A stretch of 64,000 bases of DNA, from positions 155,558,001 to 155,622,000 of the forward strand of contig NW_027362772.1 of assembly GCF_046119375.1 (NCBI RefSeq), written 5' to 3'. Position 1 is the first letter of the stretch. Each line of letters opens with the position of its first letter. A program made the position numbers and the translations under genes. Source of the stretch: Phyllobates terribilis. Taxonomy: Eukaryota. The notes under the pieces are model-generated. The model saw nothing but the letters and a program-made list of their open reading frames with translations. It was not told the DNA's origin and did not search any database. Below, one piece after another: positions 50,756-60,791 of the stretch.

Positions 50756-51295
50756 TGTATTTTTTTGCATATGACAGGTCCTTTGATAACGAAAGAACAG
50801 TAGACTGCACTTTAAATGCAGAGGGCCACTACATAAACAACAAAAAAATCATGCCATGTGTTACTCAGTTTACTACAAGGGGTCTCTATAGTGGATAGAT
50901 GGCTAGAGATCAGTCCTGACTGTGGCCACTGTGTACCTTCTAAGCGTATGTGCCCAACACTGGCCATAAGCAAAATGTGTCCCTGGCCTTAAGACAATTT
51001 TATTTCTTAATTTAAATAGGTAACTTATCACTTTTGGGTTGGGTTTGTATAACACAAGAATTGCTGTGACCTGAGGATTTCTGAGGTCCGGGTGATTAAT
51101 AATGATAAAATATTGGCTTGTCCCTCTGAAATCTAGATGACCAGAGGTCTTTAGAGCCCTTCATTGTTTTTTTTGGGGAACTGACCATTCAATTATTTTT
51201 CACAGGTAGAGACCTAAGCGTAGCGCCACCGATTTGAAGTGATGCAATATTCCTGAAGGCAGTGACATTCAAGCAAATAATAAGAGAACGCAATC

Positions 51296-51355
51296 ATGTC
51301 GGTGATATACAGCGAAGTCGCAGTTGAGGAACCAACCAGTGACAGCTTCTGGATG
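51296..51355 (+). CDS. PACSIN/syndapin-family gene, first coding exon: MSVIYSEVAVEEPTSDSFWM
   Basis: Exon opens at acceptor ttttcacAG (51205). ATG 51296 has an in-frame stop 15 nt upstream. DSFW is the conserved PACSIN N-terminal motif; donor ATG|GTAAGC. Confidence 0.9.
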
Positions 51356-51800
51356 GTAAGCGGAAAGTTTTGGTTTTTTTTTTACAATATTTATTTTACG
51401 GTAAAAAAATCACCTGTTAACTTTATTCTACAGGTCAGTCAGTTATGGTGATACCAAATTTACCTAATTTAATTTTTATTTTACTACTTAAAATTTAAAA
51501 AAATGTAAAGAAAAATTATTTTGTATCGTCATATCCTGAAAACAAATATCTGTTTTAACTTTTAGTCGATAAGCGTTTTATCGGGGCTCGTCCTTTGCTG
51601 GATCATTTTGGGGTACATACATCTTTGCTTTGGGAAAATGGGGATGATTTGAATTGTTCAAAAATATTTTAAACTGTTTTTATTTTTTTACATTTTTATT
51701 AGTCACCCTAGGGGAATTGAACCTGTGATTGCTTGATGAACTCATAAAATACATTGTAATACTGTAGTATTGCAGTCTATGATAACACTCTGGAAGACTC

Positions 51801-52126
51801 TGGAACTCTCTGGGAGAGGAAGTGGTGATGTCCAACTCACTTAATGAGTTCAAGAGAGGCCTGGACGCCTTTCTTGAGAACAATAAAATTACATCTTATG
51901 CTTAGTGATAGTTAATTAATCCAGGGATTTAATCTGACTGCCAGATTGGTGTCGGGAAGTGAATTTTTCCTCAATGATGTAAATTGGCCTATACCGCATG
52001 TTTTTTTTTTGCCTTCCCCTGGATCAACGCTGCGGAATAGCTGCAGTGCACAAGAAATAGGCTGAACTGGATGGACGCTTGTCTTTTTTCGGCCTTATAA
52101 ACTATGTAACTATGTAACTATGTAAC
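51801..52126 (+). mobile_element. CR1 LINE 3' end in PACSIN intron 1
   Basis: WNSLGEEVVMSNSLNEFKRGLDAFL is a typical CR1 RT C-terminus. 3' UTR ends in (TATGTAAC)n. Confidence 0.85.
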
Positions 52127-52825
52127 ATTGACAGGGAGGCATAGATGACAAAATGCTTCACTGTTTCCAATCATTTAAAGGGGGCCTTTTATCAGAATTT
52201 TTAATTTAAACGGAGTTCTGCCTTCAATTACCGCTGATCCATTGATTCTGGAACAACTTTTTTCTTCTCTGCCCCTCCATTCCAAAGTTATGCCATCATA
52301 AAATGTTCCTTCAATCAACTGGCTATATACCACAGAACTTATCTGTGGGCGTGGCCATGTTTTGATTGGCCAGAGTCAGAAAAGAAAATGCAAACGCTGC
52401 TGCGATTGGAGGTGGCTATGATTATAGTATTTTAACCGCTAAGTGTCTGTTGTCAGTGACATTTAAAGGGGATGTTTTTTATTTAAAGTGAGTAGTTATT
52501 ACAATTAGTGCAGATCCACTGATTCTGGAACAGTTTTTCATTTTCTTCTGCGCCCTTCCGTTCCAAAGTTATGTCCCCTGGAAATAATCCCTTCACTAAA
52601 CTGGGTGTGTACTACAGAATTTCTCTGTGGGCATTTGCATGTTCTCCTCTGACTCTGGCCAACCAAAACATGGCCACGCCCACAGAAGTTCTGTGGTACA
52701 CGCCCAGTTTATTGAAGGGATTATTTCCAGGGGACATTACTTTGGAACGGAAGGGCGCCAAAGAAAATTAAAAACTGTTCCAGAATCAGTGGATCTGTGC
52801 CAATTGGAAGAGCTACTCTGTTTAA

Positions 52826-59546: not shown

Positions 59547-59641
59547 GAGTGGAGTCCGGATATTGAGCAACAGATAGTAAAAAAGAAGAAAGTGAAAGAG
59601 GAAAAAGTGAAGTTATACAGTGTGACGCCCACAGAAAGCAG
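59547..59641 (+). CDS. PACSIN-family exon 7 (linker): EWSPDIEQQIVKKKKVKEEKVKLYSVTPTES
   Basis: cctctgtAG acceptor, AG|GTGAGA donor, phase 0->2. Begins with the conserved EWS.D. Confidence 0.9.
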
Positions 59642-60272
59642 GTGAGATTATACAGGTTATATAAAATACATCCAGAAATACCGCACCGCTGACAAAGTCA
59701 GAAGAAAATACTTTTTAAAAGAAGTTTTCCAGTTTTGGCTGCAGTTTAAAAAAAAAAAACAAAAAAAAAAAAAGTGCCTTTGTCACCATCCCCAGGTCCA
59801 GTGCTGAGTCTCCTCCACTGCTGTGTCTGCAGCACTGATGTCACTTCGACAGCACTGTAGACAATCAGTGTTCTGCTAGAGTTGATGACAAAAGCCGACT
59901 AATTCACTGATTAGCTGCAGCGCTGTCGACGTGACATCAGCGCTGCAGACAATAACAGACATCGGGAACAGTGGCGGAGACTCAACCTACTAACTCCAAT
60001 GTTTGTAGGCTGCATGCTAAATATAGAAGGAAGTAAGGAGGCAATTTAGTGCCTTATTTCAGTGCACTATGTAATACCTAATTGCCCCTGCAGAGGCGCT
60101 GCAGGGAAGAATGGCTTCCAGTAGCCAATGGCTAGCTCTGATATTACACAAGCAGGAGTTTTGGGGGTTAATCAGATAAAGAAACTGGAGGAAAAAACTA
60201 AAATTCAATAACGATGAAAATGTCTTCTAGTTTCAACATCTACTAAGTGGTACTACAAGATGTGTCTTTTAA

Positions 60273-60661
60273 AGAGAACCTGTCCCCAGGTCAAAAGTGT
60301 CCAGTTTTTGTTGTTATTTTATTCCCGCGGATTCCCTGAGTATTCTACTTTTTTATTTTTTTAAATCCGCCATACGGTTCCAGACATATGGGCCTTTTTA
60401 TTTAGTGCTTTTTTTATAGTCATTACACAGGGGTGGGGCTCACTGGGTAATTATGCAGAGCAGCCTAAAGACACGCCCCGGCGGAATCTGTGAGCCACGC
60501 CCCTTGGTTAACGCCATACAAATTAGCACTAACTTAAAAGGCCCATATCTCTTGAACTGTAGGGCGGATTTTAAAAAAACTAAAAAATTAATAATCAGGG
60601 GAGCGGCGGGAATAAAATGAGAACAAAAAATTGTCTATTTTTATCTGACGACGGGTCGTCT
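60273..60661. mobile_element. T2/Kolobok-like MITE (related copies at ~22.9-23.3 kb and ~29.2-29.55 kb)
   Basis: TTAA-agagaacctgtc ... gacgacgggtcgtct-TTAA, with an internal palindromic layout. Confidence 0.65.
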
Positions 60662-60696
60662 TTAACTCATTACAATATTTATTTTCTGGTTCACAG

Positions 60697-60791
60697 TATG
60701 AATAAAGCACCAGTAAATGTCCCCGGAGTGCGGGTACGAGCTGTCTATGACTATTCAGGCCAGGAGTCTGATGAGCTCAGTTTTAAAGCAG
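60697..60791 (+). CDS. PACSIN-family exon 8 (start of SH3): [32 protein letters not shown]
   Basis: ggttcacAG acceptor, G|GTAAGG donor, phase 2->1. The final SH3 exon was not found in the window. Confidence 0.95.

Follow-up and report, generated by a model that had tools for sequence, protein, structure and literature searches.

The linkers of PACSIN1 and PACSIN2 usually contain NPF motifs which bind EHD proteins, and for PACSIN1 an autoinhibition by the SH3 domain on the F-BAR domain is known. According to a review from 2022, vertebrates including amphibians have three PACSIN genes, and the extra genes of zebrafish originate from the fish genome duplication (PMC9285741; PMC2780292). The zebrafish copies were treated as pacsin3 duplicates in another paper of 2022 (PMC9235069). 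A fourth PACSIN/syndapin as a named family member was not found in the searchable PACSIN papers. In this study, we analyzed a window of 64,000 nucleotides (nt) from Phyllobates terribilis (contig NW_027362772.1, positions 155,558,001 to 155,622,000 of the forward strand). An intact and transcribed PACSIN gene, for which an initial annotation had proposed a separate PACSIN lineage, is represented in it by the first 8 coding exons, corresponding to 365 of 403 codons.

The gene very probably represents a fourth vertebrate PACSIN/syndapin lineage, here named P4, which is the sister of PACSIN3, is older than the split of the bony vertebrates, arose most likely from the vertebrate genome duplications and is seemingly gone from mammals. 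The gene itself is already annotated in many genomes, as “PACSIN1-like” in caecilians, newt and frogs, as “PACSIN2-like” in squamates and as PACSIN3 or si:ch211-51c14.1 in ray-finned fishes. What is new is that these genes are seen as one old fourth lineage, which has a linker design of its own.

Phylogenetic position and origin of the gene

An exhaustive search with exon 3 yielded mostly unnamed fragments, and cluster look-ups put names on only some of them. Via a Polypterus fragment and a word search, a set of proteins with a length of 385-424 amino acids (aa) was obtained. Two additional searches provided the named PACSIN1, PACSIN2 and PACSIN3 rows, and the outgroups (amphioxus and other invertebrates) were taken from a cluster look-up. 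The human cDNA-derived protein P0080, found among 150 representative matches, was classified in batch only and not used further. The maximum-likelihood tree was calculated with IQ-TREE (LG+C20+F+G4) from 68 protein rows and 436 columns. Support is given as ultrafast bootstrap (UFBoot)/Shimodaira-Hasegawa-like approximate likelihood ratio test (SH-aLRT).

P4 forms a clade with a support of 100/100, which holds the dendrobatid frog orthologues. PACSIN1 (100/98), PACSIN2 (99/95) and PACSIN3 (100/98) are each separately monophyletic, and all of them exclude P4. The separate lineage proposed in the initial annotation is therefore recovered by the tree. The topology is ((1,2),(3,P4)), in which the pair of PACSIN1 and PACSIN2 and the pair of PACSIN3 and P4 have an SH-aLRT of 96 each. 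The four vertebrate clades are set apart from amphioxus and the other invertebrate rows with a support of 99-100. In addition, each exon alone scores highest against P4, also when frogs are removed (summed 618 bits vs. 442-474 bits for PACSIN1-3). The full-length orthologues of 403 aa show an identity of 82-98% in frogs and of 70% in the coelacanth.

Members of P4 were found in ray-finned fishes (bichir, paddlefish, gar, bowfin and teleosts), coelacanth, caecilians, newt, many frogs and squamates. The initially suggested retention in fish and amphibians holds for both groups, but the range is wider, since coelacanth and squamates have the gene too. P4 occurs alongside PACSIN3 in gar and in the caecilian Geotrypetes, alongside PACSIN1 and PACSIN3 in bowfin and tarpon, alongside PACSIN1 in bichir and alongside PACSIN2 and PACSIN3 in coelacanth. 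Gar, bowfin, tarpon, coelacanth and Geotrypetes have one gene each in the PACSIN3 and P4 clades. The internal branching of P4 follows the species tree. In teleosts there are two P4 subclades, which match the fish genome duplication. A retrocopy, a frog-specific duplicate and a teleost-only duplicate were rejected.

The database names of the P4 members vary between PACSIN1-like, PACSIN2-like and PACSIN3, and against mammalian chains of the PDB the single exons have near-equal scores to all three paralogues, so that the paralogue is not assignable in this way. Both would fit a fast-evolving frog orthologue of PACSIN1 (compare the RefSeq name “PACSIN1-like”), PACSIN2 or PACSIN3. This explanation is extremely improbable, however, as all three named clades exclude P4 with a support of 95-100%, the identity to PACSIN1-3 is only 45-55%, and bichir, bowfin, gar, tarpon, coelacanth and caecilian possess P4 beside true PACSIN1, 2 or 3. 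Orthology to PACSIN1 was rejected because its clade lies in the opposite half of the tree and because a linker of about 85 aa with NPF would be expected, compared to 42 aa without NPF here. For PACSIN2, the clade holds the dendrobatid proteins P0288 and P0297, which are far from P4, and the two to three NPF motifs expected for this group are missing here. The PACSIN3 clade excludes P4, which itself is supported with 100/100.

The P4 lineage probably originated before the split of the sharks, and the vertebrate genome duplications are its most likely source. For an ohnologue, the 2 + 2 shape of the tree was seen, along with an 81-aa shark fragment placed in a quick tree and neighbouring genes which are linked to a paralogon by human maps. 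With its 81 residues, the fragment, from Scyliorhinus torazame, branches from the P4 stem in the quick tree and is sister to the P4 of all bony vertebrates (SH-aLRT 98). Regarding the neighbours, MED25 is arranged tail-to-tail with the P4 gene in Dendrobates, and a histidine acid phosphatase gene (His_Phos_2) is located upstream of P4 in gar. A gene for a 1762-aa protein with PDZ and SAM domains lies upstream of P4 in Takifugu, and in the catfish Clarias magur a model named SHANK1 (P0086, 1947 aa) runs into the P4 gene. When the loci of gar and Takifugu were compared with the window in translation, only the P4 exons and no shared neighbour were found. Human MED25, SHANK1 and ACP4 are located at 19q13.33, a paralogon of 11p11.2, the home of PACSIN3, ACP2, NR1H3, SPI1 and MYBPC3. 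The neighbours MED25, SHANK1 and acid phosphatase thus point to the human 19q13.33 paralogon of 11p11.2. Another accidental record of gene order, like P0086, is the sturgeon model P0278 (Acipenser sinensis, 740 aa), which fuses ArfGap and PACSIN3.

P4 could also be a later small-scale duplicate of PACSIN3, e.g., a segmental one from early jawed or bony vertebrates, which evolved fast and is not a product of the two duplication rounds. The sister position to PACSIN3, the absence of NPF in both, the long P4 stem as a burst of change and the treatment of the zebrafish copies as pacsin3 duplicates (PMC9235069) are in line with such a duplicate, and a full-length PACSIN3/P4 pair from a cartilaginous fish or lamprey is absent from the data set. 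We nevertheless consider it quite unlikely. The ((1,2),(3,4)) shape is what two duplication rounds predict, the PACSIN3 clade with coelacanth, lungfish, tetrapods and ray-finned fishes excludes P4 at 100/98, and the shark fragment is found on the P4 stem. Moreover, the neighbours of P4 differ from those of PACSIN3 and, by the human maps, fit another paralogon, 19q13.33.

Several points weigh against a fourth lineage of this age and distribution. In the tree, the database orthologues P0246 and P0243 were used as stand-ins for the window protein. With 0.54 changes per site, the stem of P4 is long, and the position as sister of PACSIN3 could reflect long-branch effects. The shark placement is based on 81 residues and a quick tree. 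PACSIN1 and PACSIN3 of frogs were not among the sequences compared; the presence of all four genes in this frog is deduced from the “-like” naming, the Xenopus PACSIN1/2/3 accessions (PMC2780292) and a caecilian with PACSIN3 and P4. Mammals, birds, crocodilians and turtles do not occur among the P4 matches listed (the best 120 of 205), which is not proof of absence. From these matches and general knowledge, P4 appears to be missing from mammals, and we infer the same for birds, crocodilians and turtles. Membrane bending, the lack of EHD binding, the role of the basic linker and a role in frog muscle, as considered below, are all inferred.

Gene model, transcripts and the rest of the window

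When all three forward frames were read together with the splice borders, 8 coding exons were found on the plus strand from 51296 to 60791, with a total of 1096 nt, corresponding to 365.3 codons. The ATG at 51296 is the first in-frame ATG after in-frame stops just upstream. AG and GT are present at each internal exon border, the phases are continuous and every intron follows GT...AG. The motif DSFWM|PNNY spans the junction of exons 1 and 2, and KPIVDAS|PMYGSL that of exons 2 and 3. Taken in order and without interruption, the exons match residues 1-365 of the proteins from Dendrobates tinctorius and Ranitomeya variabilis (P0246, P0243; 403 aa) with an identity of 92-100% per exon. In the RefSeq models of both related frogs, the exons follow each other contiguously in the same order, and from the identity per exon it follows that our exon model equals that of RefSeq. 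The exons are as follows.

Exon 1, 51296..51355, plus strand: ATG to DSFWM, 20 codons, with GT donor; 100% identity to P0246 residues 1-20; the contig loose end at 56488 carries the last 30 nt of the exon.
Exon 2, 56489..56645, plus strand: start of F-BAR, PNNY...KPIVDA, with AG/GT borders; Pfam FCH 46.4 bits; 96% identity to P0246 residues 21-72; splice 56645>57025 in 4 runs.
Exon 3, 57025..57260, plus strand: F-BAR helix 2/3 with the wedge loop YHRKIFGGF and AG/GT borders; both joints in transcripts; 100% identity to P0246 and P0243 residues 74-151; PACSIN1/2/3 of the PDB about equal, 93-105 bits.
Exon 4, 57545..57700, plus strand: F-BAR, with AG/GT borders; 96-98% identity to frog P4 residues 152-203; joints in transcripts.
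Exon 5, 58392..58567, plus strand: F-BAR, with AG/GT borders; 100% identity to P0246 residues 204-261; joints in transcripts; PACSIN matches of the PDB 47-53 bits.
Exon 6, 59149..59269, plus strand: end of F-BAR, with AG/GT borders; 92% identity to P0246 residues 263-302; joints in transcripts.
Exon 7, 59547..59641, plus strand: basic linker EWSPDIEQQIVKKKKVKEEKVKLYSVTPTES, with AG/GT borders; 94-97% identity to frog P4 residues 303-333; direct splicing to exons 6 and 8 in 4 of 4 runs; linker conserved across tetrapod P4.
Exon 8, 60697..60791, plus strand: end of the linker and first third of SH3, with AG/GT borders; Pfam SH3_1 22.9 bits, at the cut-off; 100% identity to P0246 residues 335-365; the transcript runs on into an exon reading DELTKIEDED.

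For the transcription of the gene, four public RNA-type runs from two studies were compared over 56400-62399. Public runs of this organism contain approximately half of the words sampled from an exon-intron-exon probe, as would be expected if the exons alone are present. In all 4 runs, spliced contigs with a length of 940-2072 nt lack precisely the six introns that separate exons 2 to 8. The joints are 56645>57025, 57260>57545, 57700>58392, 58567>59149, 59269>59547 and 59641>60697, all of them GT..AG, and the intron depth is near zero outside repeats. The loose ends of the contigs correspond to the 3' end of exon 1 and to a further SH3 exon beginning with DELTKIEDED. The 8 phase-consistent exons of 1096 nt claimed in the initial annotation are confirmed by the reading frames, the AG/GT borders and the spliced contigs joining exons 2-8. 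The claimed motifs (DSFWM-PNNY, the wedge loop HRKIFGGF, the hallmark at the end of the F-BAR in exon 6 and the start of the SH3) are all present as well.

The next SH3 exon, as read from the loose end of the transcript, was not found within the 64-kb window, and consequently the gene runs off the 3' end of the window. The orthologue in Dendrobates tinctorius spans 24 kb, so that the last 38 codons with the rest of the SH3 are expected beyond base 64000. An additional linker exon coding for NPF, which would speak against the proposed linker, was not observed in the contigs of the 4 runs, which can miss rare isoforms; exons 6, 7 and 8 are joined directly in 4 of 4 runs.

The incomplete SH3 in the window and the faster evolution of the P4 clade compared to PACSIN1-3 might suggest a decaying or non-functional copy, i.e., a pseudogene or an annotation artefact. 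This is barely conceivable for a gene with an open frame over 8 exons and canonical splice sites. Its transcripts, which are spliced correctly and up to 2072 nt long, reach the missing SH3 exon, and the 403-aa orthologues are conserved (82-98% in frogs and 70% to coelacanth). In addition, the model of an orthologue folds confidently as F-BAR and SH3. The gene is therefore regarded as intact.

Two repeat regions were observed in the introns. In intron 5, a tandem array at 58617-59083 consists of 12 copies of a 39-nt unit with 98% matching. It has a long open frame of 13-residue repeats, yet is without coverage by transcript contigs. In intron 8, the region 61200-62400 shows an extreme contig depth in 4 of 4 runs with many partial or rearranged pieces. 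It looks like a highly repeated transcribed element outside of the PACSIN transcript.

The rest of the window was analyzed with Pfam and Rfam. Ten long upstream open reading frames (ORFs) between 2076 and 49461 had no match in Pfam, and the scan of the whole window at the Rfam gathering threshold gave no family match. An ORF of 151 aa on the minus strand (2073-2528) is rich in Y/E/T/P motifs (MYETEYETYG) and has no Pfam match at E 0.01. Adjacent ORFs of 128 and 146 aa on the minus strand (27330-28196) resemble two halves of a Tc1/mariner-type transposase (DNDPKH, WPSQSPDLN) and are probably a decayed transposon. At 32569-33268 and 36439-37570, both strands carry long ORFs which overlap and contain tandem repeats rich in proline, arginine and cysteine, which are probably minisatellite DNA. 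Between 36 and 38 kb, the GC content is raised to 0.54 with a strong AT skew. A run of 132 N (gap or masked) is located at 23422-23553.

Domains, linker design and possible function

The FCH/F-BAR family of Pfam was detected on exon 2 with 46.4 bits at a cut-off of 27.8, and exons 2, 3 and 5 match PACSIN F-BAR chains of the PDB with E values from 1e-11 to 1e-29. In the alignment, YHRKIFGGF from exon 3 corresponds to the wedge loop of PACSIN1-3 and has the hydrophobic pair I-F in the place of M-M or M-I. Of the SH3, only the first third is located in the window, where SH3_1 reaches 22.9 bits, exactly the cut-off; the contigs continue into DELTKIEDED, and the 403-aa orthologues have full SH3 matches in Pfam. 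For the structure, the AlphaFold model of the Dendrobates orthologue P0246, which is in the class of 98% identity, was used (predicted local distance difference test, pLDDT, of 85). The predicted fold matches PACSIN F-BAR crystals with template modeling (TM) scores of 0.82-0.94. In the model, a short hairpin is predicted at residues 121-128 (the wedge loop), residues 315-341 appear disordered and an SH3 fold is predicted at the end. A look-up in the ESM Atlas gave generic PACSIN clusters only, with no taxon range.

The linker of the gene reaches from EWSPD to NVPG. With 42 aa, 8 K/R vs. 6 D/E and no NPF, it agrees with the initial description as a basic linker of about 40 aa without this motif. 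The 365 codons here and all 29 P4 rows in which linker and loop traits were measured on the alignment are free of NPF. The traits compare as follows.

Linker length: 26-45 aa in complete P4 models (median 41); 76-96 aa in PACSIN1-3.
Linker net charge: -1 to +7 in P4 (median +3); -5 to -13 in PACSIN1-3.
NPF motifs: none in P4; 0-2 in PACSIN1, 2 in PACSIN2 (isoforms sampled) and none in PACSIN3.
Wedge loop: H(R/K)K(I/L/M)FGGF in P4; HKQM(M/I)GGF in PACSIN1-3.

The short and basic linker without NPF is a trait of the whole P4 clade, and the wedge-loop signature is clade-specific. As a mark of this gene, the missing NPF holds only in part: the motif is absent indeed, but the sister PACSIN3 equally lacks it, and therefore its absence is not special to P4.

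By analogy to known PACSIN proteins, the F-BAR domain would dimerise and form a curved, positively charged surface. The wedge loop, with I-F in place of M-M or I-M, would be pushed into the membrane and thereby contribute to the sensing and making of curvature and to tubulation. The C-terminal SH3 might recruit proline-rich partners, e.g., dynamin or N-WASP-type proteins. Without NPF, the protein should, like PACSIN3, not bind EHD proteins via such motifs. The linker, which is half as long, net basic and without the acidic serine-rich stretch of PACSIN1-3, may provide another tethering or regulation at acidic membranes. One could speculate that it makes further lipid contacts or changes the autoinhibition. 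In zebrafish, ch211-51c14.1 is switched on after 1 day post fertilization and shows an enrichment in the heart and in skeletal muscle (PMC9235069). Owing to this enrichment of the zebrafish counterpart, a membrane role in striated muscle is the best guess.

It is possible, although we regard it as doubtful, that P4 is functionally distinct. A short lysine-rich tether would then replace the long acidic, phosphorylatable and EHD-binding linker, contact acidic lipids and change or abolish autoinhibition. P4 would thus be a constitutively membrane-active, striated-muscle form in non-mammals, and its mammalian loss would be covered by PACSIN3.

Significance and comparison with known PACSIN proteins

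The fourth lineage is present in model organisms such as Xenopus and, judged by gene names in the records of other teleosts, zebrafish. Current database names mislead on orthology, and knock-out phenotypes in fish or frogs could be masked or compensated for by a fourth paralogue that goes unnoticed. Furthermore, P4 represents a natural experiment on the function of the PACSIN linker. Mammals have often lost paralogues of this kind. Since this is the case and P4 is not a new kind of protein, the weight of the finding is moderate.

The closest relative is PACSIN3/syndapin III (zebrafish zgc:56324), which forms the sister clade and shares the F-BAR, the wedge loop, the SH3 layout and the lack of NPF. 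For both mammalian PACSIN3 and zebrafish ch211-51c14.1, an enrichment in the heart and in skeletal muscle has been reported (PMC9235069). However, PACSIN3 belongs to a separate clade with an identity to P4 of about 47-53%. Its linker of 76-96 aa (net -5 to -13) has an acidic stretch of the SDWSDEE type, whereas the P4 linker has 26-45 aa and is net basic. The wedge loop reads HKQMIGGF in PACSIN3 and H(R/K)K(I/L/M)FGGF in P4, and the chromosomal neighbours of both genes differ.

Teleost proteins named in UniRef after si:ch211-51c14.1 and zgc:91999 represent the two teleost P4 subclades and share the short basic linker. Based on this naming, si:ch211-51c14.1 and zgc:91999 would be co-orthologues of the frog gene, the zebrafish sequences themselves being outside of the tree. 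In the zgc:91999-type subclade, the wedge loop is further changed to F(P/Q)(K/R)K(M/I)F(C/Y)GF. While both zebrafish genes were described as pacsin3 duplicates (PMC9235069), the lineage found here is old and present in tetrapods.

PACSIN1 and PACSIN2 resemble P4 in the F-BAR fold (TM 0.82-0.90 to the crystals at an identity of 50-53%), the wedge loop and the C-terminal SH3. In contrast to P4, they belong to the other half of the tree and have acidic linkers of 80-90 aa, usually with 1-2 NPF motifs, of which P4 has none.

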